Below are positions 33,551-63,235 of a DNA stretch of 64,000 nucleotides, piece by piece (the first letter of the stretch is position 1; every line of letters begins with the position of its first letter). The DNA lies in IMG/VR virus record IMGVR_UViG_3300009011_000002, positions 1 to 64,000 of that record. The stretch is one strand, 5' to 3'. A program made the translations under genes and the position numbers. Below the pieces are notes generated by a model that had not been told where the DNA came from, did no database searches, and saw only the letters and a list, made by a program, of their open reading frames with translations.

Positions 33551-33568
33551 ATGATATAGGTTTAAAAA
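33551..33568 (-). promoter_or_regulatory. early-type promoter TTTTTAAACCTATATCAT
   Basis: one of five copies of TTTnnnACCTAYATYAY upstream of minus-strand genes. Confidence 0.7.
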
Positions 33569-55522: not shown

Positions 55523-55578
55523 TGTGAAGTCTCTCTTCAAGTTACCGTTGGAAAAAGATCATTGTGATCTCTACCGAA

Positions 55579-55596
55579 ATGATGTAGGTCTGAAAT
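55579..55596 (-). promoter_or_regulatory. early-type promoter ATTTCAGACCTACATCAT
   Basis: copy of the conserved motif upstream of phuZ. Confidence 0.7.
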
Positions 55597-55644
55597 ATTC
55601 TTTCCCGTTGCCAAACCTACATTTGCTGCAATTCGTACAGGCCT

Positions 55645-55800
55645 AAAAATAACCTCCCACCGCCCCAGCGGGGAACTGCCTAGCGGCAGGAGGGTTCCCA
55701 TCTAAGAGAACGAAGAGCCTGATAAAGGATACCCGTCTTGCTGGAGAACCTAACCAAAAGCCAACCAGCCGTACACGAGTATAAGATATGGTCAGCCAAG
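55645..55800 (-). ncRNA. candidate small structured RNA ending in an intrinsic terminator
   Basis: non-coding, between two terminators; stem 55653-55693 followed by TTATTTTT. Confidence 0.35.
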
Positions 55801-55804
55801 TAAC

Positions 55805-56115
55805 AAAAAAATAAAGTTAGTACCTCACCAACTCCTGGCCCGAGACGGGGTTGGCCAGGAGAGGTGAGGGGGCAGGGCACAGCAATGGCACAGCAACAGC
55901 AAGGGAGGCACAGCAATGGAACTATCACACGGGGCACAGCAGGGTGGAACGGATTCAGTGGGGTTTTTCTGTAGCCTGCCGATGAACGCAGACCTAACCG
56001 GCTTTACGGGACACTCGCCGGTTATTGCGGTAGGTTTATCACCCCCAACCTTGCCACGAACCTTCAGCCACTATCTCAGAGCAAACTTCATGAGTTCACA
56101 TAGGATAACAACAAC
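55805..56115 (-). ncRNA. candidate structured RNA / long 3' UTR with UGCUGUGCC repeats
   Basis: TAACCGGC/GCCGGTTA hairpin, four 9-mer repeats, long hairpin 55823-55869 plus U-run. Confidence 0.45.
55876..55941. repeat. four direct repeats of GGCACAGCA(A)
   Basis: copies at 55876, 55887, 55907, 55933 and a partial CAGCAA at 55897. Confidence 0.85.
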
Positions 56116-56748
56116 TCAGTGGATCGTTGCAGGCGCTTCTGCCACTTCAGGGGTATGAGGGGTAGGGGCAACTTCTGCGTCGGTCCGTTGAGCCGGTGGA
56201 GCTGACGGTTGTACGGTTTCCAGTGCCGGTGGGCGCTTGCTCAGCACTGCCGGAACCGGAGGAACTTCAAAGATCTGCAGGTTACCGCCGCAACCTACGT
56301 CGAGCTTGCACGCTGACTTGACACCCAGGCGCGCACCTTTGCCAATGGCCATGACACCCAGGGCAAAGTCAGTACCCGAACCAATCGCCACCGGTGGCAG
56401 CATCGGCAGGAGCTCATGGCGGTCCCGGTTGCGTTCTTTGGTCTTCACGACCTTCCACGTCCAGAGCTCGCCCTTCTCGTTGATCACCAGCGCGTGGAAC
56501 GCGATGTTGTCCTGATCTTCGAAACGGGTCTTGTGGGAGATACCCTCCTGGAGTTTCTCTTTGACGTAGTCAATTGCCAAGGCATCCCCAGCCAAGCCGA
56601 AGGCGATTACCTTGACGCCGTTGATTTCCCAGTACTGGTCATCCTCCGGGGTGTAAATCTTCCGGAAGGGGCTCAGGCATACGGTGTCACCCAAAGTCAT
56701 TTGGGAATCGCTGACAAGTTCTTTGCCGTCGAATGCGATGATGGTCAT
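56116..56748 (-). CDS. HslV/proteasome beta-subunit-like Ntn hydrolase
   Basis: Thr at position 2 (MTIIA), SDSQMT, RKI, GLAGD, AIGSG, D..CGG; Pro/Ala-rich tail; GGAG RBS. Confidence 0.8.
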   Translation of the reverse strand: MTIIAFDGKELVSDSQMTLGDTVCLSPFRKIYTPEDDQYWEINGVKVIAFGLAGDALAIDYVKEKLQEGISHKTRFEDQDNIAFHALVINEKGELWTWKVVKTKERNRDRHELLPMLPPVAIGSGTDFALGVMAIGKGARLGVKSACKLDVGCGGNLQIFEVPPVPAVLSKRPPALETVQPSAPPAQRTDAEVAPTPHTPEVAEAPATIH

Positions 56749-56823
56749 GTGTATACAATACTCCGTGACTTGGTGTTTCGGTTTGGTTAGGTTCGTGTAA
56801 TATTCTTTTTGAGTTACAAATCA

Positions 56824-56841
56824 GTGATGTAGGTTTGAAAT
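56824..56841 (-). promoter_or_regulatory. early-type promoter ATTTCAAACCTACATCAC
   Basis: copy of the conserved motif upstream of the HslV-like gene. Confidence 0.7.
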
Positions 56842-57021
56842 CCTCCCGTCCCCTTCTGTTTACCTCGCGTGCGCGTTTAAGTTAATATATCTTTTTAGAT
56901 ATTTAAGTAAATTAAGATAAATCTTAAAAGCAAATTAGGATACTACTACTACGTAGTAGGTTCTTTAGCGCACGGAGCGCGTCCGCGCACGTGCACGCGG
57001 AATAGAGAAGGGAAAGGATTT
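56838..57021. other. origin-like element: AT-rich core flanked by imperfect inverted repeats
   Basis: arms share AAATCCT, CCCTTCT and CGCGTGC blocks; core 56876-56937 is about 85-90% AT. Confidence 0.45.
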
Positions 57022-57276
57022 TTCTGACTGAGTAAATTGGGAAATAAGAATTTTTAACACTCTGAATTTTCCGAAGGAATTGTCTAACGACAAATCTTCA
57101 AAACCCCCGCCAGGAAAAATCTTCTATCCCCGCCCCGCCGAGGAAATCGATTATAACACCCCGACCAGCGTCGTAGACAACGAACAAACCATAAACCCAC
57201 CCAACCCTACCGGGTTGAGCAGATCGTTGATTTAACGCGATTCTAGAACGTTTTAGATTTTGGGATAAAAACCGTC

Positions 57277-57292
57277 AAAAGGGATGCTATAG
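57277..57292 (+). promoter_or_regulatory. candidate late promoter (AGGGATGCTATAG)
   Basis: shares AGGGATGCTAT with 1789-1805. Confidence 0.35.
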
Positions 57293-57347
57293 ACCAACTT
57301 AGTAGAACGGGGATAATGGTGTTCCTGTAGCAGAATAGGGGTTGAAC

Positions 57348-58196
57348 ATGAACTGTGTTGATTACGCCATCAACCGGATTCTGAACGGTTCAGATATCGA
57401 CCAGTACCTTCTGGAACTGGCGTTCAAGAATCCAAACGCAAACTACGCGGGTAACTGGTTTAACCTGGTCAACCAGACCACCGTTGAGCAGGGCATCCGC
57501 GAGAAAGTCATCCACCGCCTGGTACTCCCGGCCTGTAACGTGAGTGGTGGTAAAACCGAGTTCCTGGACTTGTCTGGAGCCACCACCACTGACCTCGGTA
57601 ACGGGTGTATGGAGGTCAACGTACCAGACGTCTCCACCGGAGGTCGGAAGATCATCTCGGTGACGGAAGTGTATCTGGGTGCCATGACTTCGGCCGTCGG
57701 TCAGCTGGGTATGGCGGTCAGTGAGAACACCATGTGTGGGAGCGGTGCTGGTAACGACATGCTCCAGGGTTTGATCGATGGGTTGTCCCCTCAGCGGAAC
57801 TTCCCGTTGACGTTTACCAACTTGCACATGAAGGGTAACAACTGCTTCGTGATCTTTGGTATCCCGAACGGGAACATTTCCCTGTCGGCCAAAGCGGTCA
57901 TGGAGTACGACTCCGGCATGAGCAGCATTTCGCCACGTCACTACGAATACTTTGCCAAACTGGTAGAGCACGCAGTGAAGGCGTATATCTACCGGACTTG
58001 CAAACGCCCAACCAACGAAGCCATCATGCGTTCCGGTGTGAGCCTGAGTGACATCAAGGACGACATTGCGGAATACCGTGATGCGTGGACCAATTACGAG
58101 GAATACCTCAACGACACCTGGCGCCGTTGCATGGCGTGGAGTGACCGTCAGTTGGTGGTGGATACTGTCAACGCGGCTGTTCCTCGTCGCATGTAA
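57348..58196 (+). CDS. conserved phiKZ-like protein, possibly virion-associated
   Basis: 282 aa from ATG 57348 with AGGGG RBS. Confidence 0.65.
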   Translation: MNCVDYAINRILNGSDIDQYLLELAFKNPNANYAGNWFNLVNQTTVEQGIREKVIHRLVLPACNVSGGKTEFLDLSGATTTDLGNGCMEVNVPDVSTGGRKIISVTEVYLGAMTSAVGQLGMAVSENTMCGSGAGNDMLQGLIDGLSPQRNFPLTFTNLHMKGNNCFVIFGIPNGNISLSAKAVMEYDSGMSSISPRHYEYFAKLVEHAVKAYIYRTCKRPTNEAIMRSGVSLSDIKDDIAEYRDAWTNYEEYLNDTWRRCMAWSDRQLVVDTVNAAVPRRM

Positions 58197-59959: not shown

Positions 59960-62900
59960 TTATGCCGCTCTTCGGTTTTGCAACATCCGCTTGGAACGCT
60001 CGACCTTGGCGTCTGCCAACAGCTGGTCGATGGTCAACAGCTTGTACGTTTCTGGTGGGAGCAGTTTGCTGAGTTTGTAAACCTCGGCTTCCAACCGTAG
60101 CGCCAAGATGTTGTCCCGGGTATTGAGCAACTCTTCGGTGAGTTCGTTGATCCGTTTCTTCAGGTTGTCGACAAACGCCTGAATACTTGGATCGATCTTC
60201 GGTTCTTCCTTGGTCCGACCCATGGTCAGCAGGTTACGCACATCCGACAGCGCAATACCCGTTGGGATACCGTACATCGGTTTGTTTGCCCCCAGCTTGA
60301 TGAACCAGTAAGTCAACAGCCACGCAATAACCAAGTCGTCGTGTTGCTTCGAATCGTGGTCGATGCGGTCGCCTTTAGTCCGCAGGTTGATCAACTCGTC
60401 CGCCAGCTTGTCGTAGGCAATACCGTAACCAGTTACCCCGACCGCTTCTTGCAAGAGGCCGTACAGCACAGCCCGGCTCTTCGACGTCGTGTTGAACCCG
60501 AAGTGTTGCTTGAACTTGAGGTAGAAGTTCTTGTTGCGGTAAGCAAACTTGGTGTTGTTCACTTCCGCATACTCCTTTTCATGGTTCACCGGATCTTGGT
60601 AGATCTGGTTATAAATCCGCGTAAACGGATCCATCCCTTTCATGGGGAGCATGATCAAGAGGTTGTCGATCATGTGGTGAGCATAGTTACGCTCGATGAT
60701 GAGCATGCTGTTTTGCAGCACTTCCAACATGTCCACGATGATCTTCGTTACGTCGTCCAGGAACGCCAATGGATAACGTCCTACCCCAACCACCTTACCG
60801 GTCCGTATACTGCGGATAATCAACGTACAGGCGTCCTTGTTGATTGCCGATGAGGTGTCCACCCCGATGAGGAAGAAGTCGTTATGCTCTTTCTTGCTCA
60901 TCTCCATCAGTTGCTCTTGGGTCACAAAGAAGTCCATGAAGAGCCCACTGTCCCGGTACTCCTTACTCCAGATCTTGTCCCGCTTGATGTTGTTGATGGC
61001 CTCCCGGGTTACGTCGTCGAACACCCGGTTCTCACCGTCCTCCACCCACATGAGCAGCAAGTCGATTTTCGCCTTACTGATACTCAGGTTCAGCAAGTCG
61101 ATGGTTTCTTTCACCCACTCCCTGTCCTTACCGAGCTGCAGGTAGTTATACACCATCGAAACCGCAGGTGCGGTAGTCTTCTTAGGCGAAGCCCTGAGCA
61201 GGCGTTCCTTGAGATGACTTTCGCTGTAGGAGTCGAAGAACTTCTCCCGCCATTCGGTAGCGTCCATCAACTTCTTGAACATGAACTCCCCACTTGGGTG
61301 GAGGGTAGTGTTCGGCGTGGTGATGTGGGCAATACCGTACGGCTTACCTTGCTTACGGGCGTTCTCCATCGCGGTCAGTGCAGAAGGTGCACAACCGTTA
61401 ATGATCTCTTCGATGAAGTTGATGTAACCGCTTTCGTCGTAGATCGTGGTTTCTACCGTGAGACCACGACCCAAGTCACCAGCAGCATCCCGACCCATTT
61501 GCGGCACAGAGATGGTGAGGGTGTTAACGTTCTCATCACCAAAGGCCTTGTAGTTCAGGTAGTTACCGGAGTCCTTGTCTCGCCACGTTGGGTTCACCAA
61601 GTAGTCCGGCATACAGGTCCGGATCTTCTTAACCGCGTCAATGAACTGAGCCCGGTTATCCGACTTCAACGTGATGAGGTGAGACTTGTACCCCCGGCCG
61701 TTGATGTAGGTCAACCAGAAGTTGATAACCTGAACCGACACGGTGTTGTGCGTGACAATGAAGTCATCCGTGATGTACAGCTGTTCTTGGTCATCAACCT
61801 CAATGCACGTCGCGTTGTCGTCGAAGGCATAGTCGATGCGGTTAACGTACAGCTTGTTGGTGAGAGGGATCATCACCGCCTTGCTGTAGAACTTGAACGG
61901 TTGAACGTTGTGTTCCTGGATCGGCAGGGTGATCTTCAGTTCACAACGGTTCTGCTGAGCGGTGCCACCCAGGCTGTTCACCAGGTACTTCACATGACGC
62001 CCTACGGTGACGCTAGGGGCACGATAAACGATTCCCTTCGTCGCACTACCACCTTGGTCCAAAAGACCGTGTAACAGCGCGATGCGGTCTTCCAGAGCAC
62101 CGTCGAGGTACTCATGTGGCAAACCGTGTTTAACGTCGAAGTTAATCTCCGCACCGTTCAGACGGCGAATGATCCGTTGGTCACCTTCACCGATCAGCTC
62201 GTAACCTTCCGGTAGGTGTTCCCGGACGTAGGTGTCTTGAGCAACGCCGTGGCTGGTGTAGTACAACCGACCTTTCGATTGCCAGGCGGTGTACATCAGA
62301 CCCATGATGTACGGATGGATCTTCAGCTTCTTCTTGGGCCCGTCAATGGGTGCTACCAACGGGACTTCGAAACGACGTCTCCCACCCTTCTTGTCCAGTT
62401 CCAACGCCAAACGAGCGGTACTGAAGTCACCGGTGATCCCGTCCTTGTTGTCGAACAAGGTCCACAAGTGTTCAGCCCCCACTTGGGTAATACGGCCGTC
62501 ACTCATGGTGACGTTGTACAGACGCATGACACCTTGTGGATGGATGCCCATCACACGGCTGGTCTTACCATGACGGTTCCAGATCTCGTCGCCAGTACGG
62601 AGTTCGGAGATCTTCTTCCAGCTAACGTTACCGTCTTCACCCACCACAGCCACTTCGTTCTGATCCCACTGCATCTTGCCTTGCTGACGCGGCATGATCA
62701 TGTACGTGGTGATGTGGTTCAGGTAAGTCCAGATGAAACTGATGTTACCCCGGTTGGCCATGAAGTTCAGTTCAGGCTTCAACCGACACACCTCTCGCAG
62801 GAAGTACCAAAAGTTAGCTCGGCATTCTTCTGCAATCCAGGTGCGTTGTTCGTTGGTCAAATCCTCAGCGTAAGGATCCACCCCTTTCAACATAGGGTTG

Positions 62901-63235
62901 TTCAGCTGGAGGAGGAAGTAGTAGTTCTTGATTCCTTGCTTCCGGAAGACTTCGGCTGTCCGGAGGAAACTGGCGTTCTTGGTAGAAAGGTCAGCCGCTG
63001 CTTTGTAGCGAGCAAAGTCTTTCAGGAAACGGACGGTCTTGATACTGCTCAGACTGTCTTCGTTGAAGTGTGCCATGATGAGTTCATCACGGGTACGCTT
63101 GGTGTGATCGATCCGCAACCTGCGATCATCGATCAGCTCGGTTGGAAGATTCTGACAGCCCAGGTAGTCCACCAGGTCCGTCGCGAACTTCAGTACGGGA
63201 TTGTCAGATTCTGAAGTCATGCGTAACTCCGACAA
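59960..63235 (-). CDS. terL: terminase large subunit with class 3 intein
   Basis: Walker A MPRQQGK|T, Walker B IYDE, motif C ITTP, nuclease IGVD and HDDLV. Confidence 0.9.
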   Translation of the reverse strand: MSELRMTSESDNPVLKFATDLVDYLGCQNLPTELIDDRRLRIDHTKRTRDELIMAHFNEDSLSSIKTVRFLKDFARYKAAADLSTKNASFLRTAEVFRKQGIKNYYFLLQLNNPMLKGVDPYAEDLTNEQRTWIAEECRANFWYFLREVCRLKPELNFMANRGNISFIWTYLNHITTYMIMPRQQGKMQWDQNEVAVVGEDGNVSWKKISELRTGDEIWNRHGKTSRVMGIHPQGVMRLYNVTMSDGRITQVGAEHLWTLFDNKDGITGDFSTARLALELDKKGGRRRFEVPLVAPIDGPKKKLKIHPYIMGLMYTAWQSKGRLYYTSHGVAQDTYVREHLPEGYELIGEGDQRIIRRLNGAEINFDVKHGLPHEYLDGALEDRIALLHGLLDQGGSATKGIVYRAPSVTVGRHVKYLVNSLGGTAQQNRCELKITLPIQEHNVQPFKFYSKAVMIPLTNKLYVNRIDYAFDDNATCIEVDDQEQLYITDDFIVTHNTVSVQVINFWLTYINGRGYKSHLITLKSDNRAQFIDAVKKIRTCMPDYLVNPTWRDKDSGNYLNYKAFGDENVNTLTISVPQMGRDAAGDLGRGLTVETTIYDESGYINFIEEIINGCAPSALTAMENARKQGKPYGIAHITTPNTTLHPSGEFMFKKLMDATEWREKFFDSYSESHLKERLLRASPKKTTAPAVSMVYNYLQLGKDREWVKETIDLLNLSISKAKIDLLLMWVEDGENRVFDDVTREAINNIKRDKIWSKEYRDSGLFMDFFVTQEQLMEMSKKEHNDFFLIGVDTSSAINKDACTLIIRSIRTGKVVGVGRYPLAFLDDVTKIIVDMLEVLQNSMLIIERNYAHHMIDNLLIMLPMKGMDPFTRIYNQIYQDPVNHEKEYAEVNNTKFAYRNKNFYLKFKQHFGFNTTSKSRAVLYGLLQEAVGVTGYGIAYDKLADELINLRTKGDRIDHDSKQHDDLVIAWLLTYWFIKLGANKPMYGIPTGIALSDVRNLLTMGRTKEEPKIDPSIQAFVDNLKKRINELTEELLNTRDNILALRLEAEVYKLSKLLPPETYKLLTIDQLLADAKVERSKRMLQNRRAA
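61745..62674 (-). mobile_element. class 3 intein (310 aa) starting with Met, degenerate LAGLIDADG domain
   Basis: GK|MQWDQ..., block B GAEHLW, block F ATCIEV, ends IVTHN/T; LHGLLDQGG. Confidence 0.9.

Follow-up and report, generated by a model that had tools for sequence, protein, structure and literature searches.

We analyzed a 64,000-nt window that comprises the first 64 kb of IMG/VR record IMGVR_UViG_3300009011_000002, a 226,773-bp contig from a rhizosphere metagenome whose ends overlap by 123 nt and which therefore assembled as a circle. The nearest named relative of this giant phage is Pseudomonas phage EL, with about 70% nucleotide identity in the two genes to the right of the locus described here. 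Gene order is the same as in EL: a PhuZ tubulin, an HslV-family peptidase, a divergent spacer of roughly 600 nt, the gp014 (DUF7484) and gp013 homologs, a small ORF, and a large terminase (terL) that points back toward the spacer. A divergent family B DNA polymerase and its SH3 partner lie in the same leftward gene string as HslV, 5.2 kb from the element. The spacer (56749-57347) is 599 nt long and is the largest intergenic region in the window by our gene calls. The genes and features that we distinguish at this locus are as follows.

56116-56748, minus strand: HslV-family peptidase gene, the conserved neighbor of the element, identified by tblastn to annotated HslV genes of jumbo phages; the synteny holds in all relatives.
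56817-56840, minus strand: early-type promoter (assigned by motif) for the leftward string HslV, PhuZ, six small genes, SH3DP, and DNA polymerase; its upstream end overlaps the AAATCCT block of the left arm.
56838-56875, unstranded: left arm, ending in an invariant 22-mer (56854-56875) that contains the alternating CG box 56866-56875.
56876-56942, unstranded: AT-rich putative unwinding core, with a small hairpin (56887-56902), a central palindrome (56912-56927), and a conserved 17-nt block (56926-56942).
56942-56959, unstranded: distal palindrome, with a perfect 14-mer at 56946-56959.
56960-57000, unstranded: right GC block, with a conserved TTCTTTAGCG junction followed by the CG-box cluster, which includes the 16-nt alternating purine/pyrimidine tract 56984-56999.
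57001-57021, unstranded: right arm, an inverted partner of 56838-56863, with the block 57001-57013 followed by a T run.
57069-57079, unstranded: small conserved hairpin in the right half of the spacer, whose stem covaries between lineages (TTCC/GGAA versus TCCC/GGGA).
57089-57136, plus strand: two direct repeats of about 25 nt.
57144-57157, unstranded: 14-nt block, nearly invariant in five lineages, that reads on the minus strand as a -10-like GTTATAAT pointing toward the element; a promoter function is only inferred.
57280-57315, plus strand: conserved block 30 to 70 nt upstream of the DUF7484 gene, with an 11-nt invariant run and a second conserved box; by inference a likely promoter of the rightward structural-gene string.
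57348-58196, plus strand: DUF7484 gene (EL gp014 homolog; Pfam PF24302, E = 2e-80), the right-hand neighbor.

The spacer contains the least stable duplex of the genome

A preliminary description, made from the sequence alone, had reported an origin- or pac-like element at 56838-57021, and each of the features that it listed was found where it had been placed. The 62-nt core 56876-56937 is 87% AT. The arm block AAATCCT at 56838 pairs with AGGATTT at 57015, CCCTTCT at 56851 pairs with AGAAGGG at 57006, and CGCGTGC at 56866 pairs with GCACGCG at 56993. One CGTGCRC box lies on the left (56868) and three lie on the right in reverse orientation (56968, 56985, and 56991), together with an overlapping forward copy at 56990.

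When this one sequence was considered alone, two of these features did not exceed chance expectation. The inverted arms scored 23 in local alignment, against a block-shuffle mean of 25.6, and perfect 14-nt palindromes number 19 genome-wide, against about 14 expected. In contrast, other properties were extreme. The AT island 56873-56942 is the longest in the genome, and by nearest-neighbor energy it is the least stable 60-nt and 85-nt duplex (-59.6 kcal/mol, against a genome mean of -86.6 [standard deviation, 4.4], with the next window at -66.2), about six standard deviations from the mean. Five of the genome's 47 CG boxes lie within 130 nt at this locus, whereas no other window holds more than 2, and the longest GC-rich alternating purine/pyrimidine run of the genome is 56984-56999. 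Folding 56844-57020 as a single strand gave z-scores of -6.2 (plus-strand RNA), -5.7 (minus-strand RNA), and -4.3 (DNA), with 0 of 200 shuffles as good; the two arms close a domain with three small hairpins, and the 22-mer pairs with the right arm in every fold. The element has no second copy in the genome.

Several other analyses returned no signal. Tandem Repeats Finder found nothing in the spacer, a sigma-70 promoter and terminator scan was at shuffle level, and Rfam yielded only a chance-level hit (RAGATH-9, 23 bits against a threshold of 75). GC skew had been suggested beforehand as a check on an origin, but the extremes of cumulative GC and AT skew lie elsewhere in this genome, EL, and SPN3US, although the test is weak for such phages because skew follows gene orientation.

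An early-promoter-like motif abuts the left arm

The left edge of the element overlaps a recurring motif. The motif occurs at 22 intergenic sites (window positions 33554, 38579, 47449, 55582, and 56827 and 17 further sites in the rest of the genome), all directing leftward transcription. Read on the minus strand, it ends in CCTAyATyAC and is often preceded by TTAAGTTAC. It is shared with EL, where the core motif is also strand biased (17 forward, 2 reverse) and where one copy is annotated as a putative phage promoter, and it fits the AT-rich, -10-centered early-promoter class of jumbo phages that encode their own RNA polymerases (PMC7598289). The copy at 56817-56840 is conserved in five relatives. 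Given this promoter and the candidate rightward promoter at 57280-57315, the label of early/late divergence point is reasonable, although the timing is inferred from motifs only. The HslV-PhuZ spacer (55541-56115) is also about 575 nt without a called gene in this genome and in the relatives; it holds the motif copy at 55582 and an inverted partial copy at 55622, which together form a hairpin.

The arms are invariant, while the core is conserved in length, composition, and symmetry

To assess whether the element is under selection, we searched for relatives. A near-identity search of the phage collection found nothing, scans of IMG/VR and JGI metagenomes with the DUF7484 protein returned only the source contig, and pattern scans of IMG/VR gave two unrelated hits for the box-gap-palindrome pattern and none for the invariant 22-mer. 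An unrelated small phage on an IMG/VR contig (L027:1300-1420) carries the same 14-nt palindrome inside an array of CAACTACCTATAGGTAA repeats, which looks like an operator array and is a chance match to the search pattern. However, public contigs aligned to the region revealed a closer relative in a groundwater metagenome that is 97% identical over 56716-56959, compared with 85 to 95% in the surrounding genes. A protein search with HslV then identified long metagenomic contigs with the same gene order, such that five lineages (this genome and the contigs L053/L054, L055, L056, and L060) carry the element.

Although the codon third positions of the flanking genes are only 36 to 52% identical to these relatives and are thus saturated, the 22-mer 56854-56875 is identical in all five lineages, and the block 57001-57013 is invariant in four of the five. 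The right GC block is 90% identical to that of L055, and this genome and L055 are identical over 52 nt (56938-56989) that span the distal palindrome and the right CG cluster. The AT core is only 45 to 48% identical to the relatives, which is the neutral level, yet the distance between the flanking conserved blocks stays at 81 to 88 nt and the GC content stays at 9 to 21%. The distal palindrome is identical in L053, L055, and Salmonella phage SPAsTU, whereas L056 and L060 carry unrelated AT palindromes with 10- and 12-nt arms at the same position. Similarly, the central palindrome is replaced by unrelated palindromes with the same AA center in L055 and L056. These comparisons show that the arms and palindromes are real features even though they do not exceed chance in the single sequence.

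The direct repeats at 57089-57136 appeared iteron-like, and together with position 56916 they hold all three genome copies of GAnAAATCTT, in one orientation. However, the duplication is present only in this genome and L053, its closest relative, so it is lineage specific and not part of the conserved core. In L056, an HNH endonuclease gene (L056:3160-3972) is inserted between the DUF7484 gene and the conserved spacer, but the element itself is intact. A different lineage, L057-L059, has no recognizable copy of the element; about 60 to 200 nt upstream of HslV, L058 and L059 instead have a conserved, compensatorily changing structured leader, and they carry a tandem second HslV-like gene.

A homologous site is present in SPN3US-like phages

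We next examined more-distant phages, leaving out vB_PQ1, a fragmented and frameshifted assembly. In EL, the syntenic spacer holds that genome's longest AT island and weakest duplex, together with a related CTAyTAC..GTArTAG palindrome, but it lacks the CG boxes. The noncoding DNA upstream of HslV in SPAsTU and Erwinia phage Caitlin shows the same design, with SPAsTU carrying the identical 14-nt palindrome. A blastn search found this region in about 65 records of four genera, in none of which it is annotated. A profile of seven of these elements hit our genome only at 56885-56991 (E = 0.0016), and, reciprocally, a profile of our five elements hit the 240-kb SPN3US genome only at 60-231 (E = 2.5e-8) and also hit phiEaH2, Asesino, and pEa_SNUABM_11. 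EL and L057-L059 gave no profile hit, with only the AT island and a related palindrome remaining there, and RisingSun had neither a comparable island nor a profile hit. Because the element is quasi-symmetric, its orientation relative to HslV could not be fixed from sequence alone, although the stronger reciprocal hit favors the same orientation relative to HslV as in SPN3US.

In SPN3US, the core is by far the weakest duplex (5% GC over 100 nt, with the next lowest window at 26%), so that the locus is the weakest duplex in 3 of 3 genomes tested (this genome, EL, and SPN3US). The left arm is the longest alternating CG tract of the SPN3US genome, and in the enterobacterial phages the element also holds the genome's densest GATC cluster (8 in 300 nt, with the next at 4), which lies on both flanks of the core. 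The small hairpins in the core again differ in sequence between genera but keep their symmetry. The box sequence itself drifts between clades, with only the alternating CG character being kept. The motifs flanking the SPN3US element are not general promoters, since each occurs only once.

The order terL, element, HslV, DNA polymerase is kept throughout. The distance to terL is 2.9 kb here, 3.0 kb in EL, and 4.1 to 6.2 kb in five SPN3US-like phages, and the distance to the DNA polymerase is 5.2 kb here, 5.1 kb in EL, and 11 to 13 kb in SPN3US-like phages. In this genome, three genes (DUF7484, a head-protein homolog, and a 96-aa ORF) separate the element from terL, none with a terminase signature. 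The large terminase (59960-63235, minus strand) is 1,091 aa long, and SPN3US-type terminases match only residues 73-188 and 497-1004, so that about 300 residues in between are an insert of unknown nature; the EL terminase is of similar length. In SPN3US-like and Erwinia jumbo phages, an approximately 800-nt GC-rich noncoding stretch lies between the element and HslV (L019:260-1185, L017:1700-2560, L016:2420-3148, and L021:1680-2550 in the sequences analyzed). It has long invariant blocks and covarying stems across four genera and no Rfam match, so it looks like a large structured RNA, but it is absent from this genome and EL.

The element is a candidate replication origin

Taken together, these results establish a single-copy, ancient cis element, bounded to the base and under strong purifying selection, in which GC-rich, Z-DNA-prone arms in inverted orientation bracket a core of fixed length that is the weakest duplex in the genome. 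The analysis further shows that the symmetry rather than the sequence of the two palindromes is conserved and that the element is placed between the terminase/structural module and the early string that carries the DNA polymerase. Sequence-specific flanks around a core that is free in sequence but constrained in composition and length, with palindromes constrained only in symmetry, are what would be expected of protein-bound arms around a segment that must melt and fold. We therefore tentatively favor a structure-prone, supercoil-responsive unwinding module that serves as the replication origin of the phage. The GATC clustering in the enterobacterial versions, a trait shared by oriC and P1 oriR, is consistent with this reading, as is the ability of both strands to fold, which is expected of a cruciform-capable repeat at the DNA level. 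Everything beyond the anatomy, including initiation itself, is inferred from assembled sequence alone. In this view, negative supercoiling would open the core and extrude the palindromes, an unidentified phage protein would bind the invariant arm blocks (56854-56875 and 57001-57013) as an inverted pair, and the replicative helicase/primase would enter at the melted or hairpin DNA, while firing of the abutting early promoter may assist opening through the negative supercoils left behind the polymerase.

The interpretation given in the preliminary description, namely, a replication origin with an unwinding element plus iterons, a packaging-initiation site, or a DNA-shell anchoring site, was thus partly supported. 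An origin-like, evolutionarily constrained cis element at a divergence point was upheld, but the analysis did not show that the CG boxes are iterons, since alternating purine/pyrimidine CG-rich tracts rather than one box sequence survive over long distances, nor that replication starts there. Several observations weigh against an origin: the skew shows no turn at the element, no initiator gene was identified next to it, RisingSun and L057-L059 lack a recognizable copy, and EL keeps only the AT island and a related palindrome. Moreover, large lytic phages with T4-like biology may rely mainly on recombination-dependent replication, which would make a fixed origin less essential, and P1-type pac sites share the box-flanked architecture and the GATC clustering.

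A packaging-initiation site, at which terminase or an unidentified small subunit would bind the boxes on both sides of a flexible AT center that bends or melts before the first headful cut, is less likely but not excluded. It is kept alive by the conserved linkage to terL, by the CG boxes split 1 left and 3 to 4 right, and by the many linear GenBank records of SPN3US-like phages that open or close in or within about 4 kb of the element. However, several metagenome contigs (X9 contigs at window 56878/57067 and L061) break exactly at the AT core in low-coverage metagenomes, and the libraries were Nextera XT; these ends probably reflect assembly failure in 95% AT hairpin DNA, although physical ends are not excluded. 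In addition, no small terminase gene was recognized nearby, the source contig closed into a circle elsewhere, related giant phages are reported as headful packagers without detectable termini (PMC12390700) and as circularly permuted (PMC6614189), and a pac site has no obvious need to be the weakest duplex of the genome or to hold a core of fixed length and free sequence. On a par with this reading, and likewise not excluded, is a transcribed structure (a leader, small RNA, or processing site) or a supercoil-sensitive switch or insulator that couples or separates the divergent early and late promoters. The very stable fold, the covarying hairpins with several one-sided changes that give G-U pairs on the plus strand, the T run after the right arm, the position between the early promoter and the candidate rightward promoter, the weak resemblance of the right flank to the early promoter core (most clearly in L055), and the other structured noncoding stretches in neighboring spacers of related phages fit this reading. 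Nevertheless, both strands fold almost equally well, which fits DNA symmetry rather than a strand-specific RNA, no promoter that would transcribe the element was identified, the adjacent early promoter fires away from it, the other 21 early-type promoters work without such an element, no Rfam family matches, and in SPN3US-like phages the element lies in a codirectional 1.7-kb spacer rather than between divergent promoters.

A positioning site that ties the genome to the PhuZ spindle, the nuclear shell, or the entry vesicle appears very unlikely. The element is single copy and conserved, and in this genome, EL, and the metagenomic relatives it sits at the head of the operon containing PhuZ, much as TubZ systems place their centromere upstream of the operon. 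Yet SPN3US, Caitlin, and phiEaH2 keep the element but show no detectable homolog of this PhuZ (a weak negative), no tubC-like array of direct repeats is conserved, and no adaptor gene was recognized nearby; we found no evidence for or against shell anchoring. Finally, a functionless relic, whether a compositional accident or a decayed miniature inverted-repeat mobile element, is effectively refuted despite the chance-level arms and palindrome in the single sequence, given that the element is single copy in 227 kb, syntenic in all carriers, invariant over 22 nt against saturated silent sites, and linked to SPN3US-like phages by reciprocal profile hits.

In the literature that could be searched, no origin, pac site, or other genome-level cis element is defined for the giant phages that build a protein nucleus, which for the origin agrees with the preliminary description, and searches for an origin, noncoding element, or termini in SPN3US-like or nucleus-forming phages found no description of this element. 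The candidate is compact and is present in cultivable, genetically tractable phages (SPN3US and Erwinia phages), with invariant blocks that are ready to be mutated and used as bait. If it is the origin, how replication is started inside the phage nucleus and which protein starts it would become directly testable, and the element would offer a handle for building replicons or engineering these phages. If it is the packaging start, it would overturn the view that these phages package without a signal. The element also probably explains why assemblies of these phages tend to break at this spot. A more speculative possibility, which we regard as less likely than not, is that this is the first identifiable replication origin of the nucleus-forming giant phages: a symmetric, eukaryotic-virus-like origin, shared from EL-like soil phages to the SPN3US-like Salmonella and Erwinia phages, in which inverted initiator arms with Z-DNA-prone tracts clamp a fixed-length core that extrudes cruciforms and are recognized by an unidentified phage initiator inside the phage nucleus.

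Comparison with known origins and packaging sites

As in T4 oriF/oriG and the T7 primary origin, an unwinding element sits immediately beside a phage promoter in a large lytic phage with its own transcription program. However, the recognizable early promoter points away from the core, so a transcript-primed origin is not demonstrated; the conserved -10-like block at 57144-57157 reads toward the core but is a promoter by inference only. Like the P1 pac site, the element has two clusters of short repeated boxes flanking a central AT-rich region, GATC clusters on both sides in the Salmonella and Erwinia phage versions, and a terminase gene within a few kilobases. It differs in not lying within or adjacent to a small-terminase gene, and its extreme duplex instability, fixed core length, and structure-conserving palindrome swaps are not pac features.

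With phage lambda ori and bacterial oriC, the element shares an unwinding element, adjacent repeated GC-rich boxes, and a palindrome, and its enterobacterial members share the GATC clustering of oriC. In contrast to these origins, no direct-repeat iterons are conserved, no DnaA-box or O-protein-type sites were seen, the element is not inside an initiator gene, and there is no skew switch. With respect to herpes simplex virus oriS/oriL and other symmetric origins of nuclear DNA viruses (simian virus 40 and papillomavirus), there is no sequence similarity, no homolog of an origin-binding helicase was identified, the core is much longer (81 to 88 nt), and the flanks are alternating CG tracts. Nevertheless, the anatomy is analogous, with an AT-rich, palindrome-containing center flanked by boxes in inverted orientation, which are initiator boxes in the viral origins, in a compact (about 180 nt), single module between divergent transcription units, and if the element is an origin, it would work most like these compact symmetric origins and like lambda or oriC-type origins.
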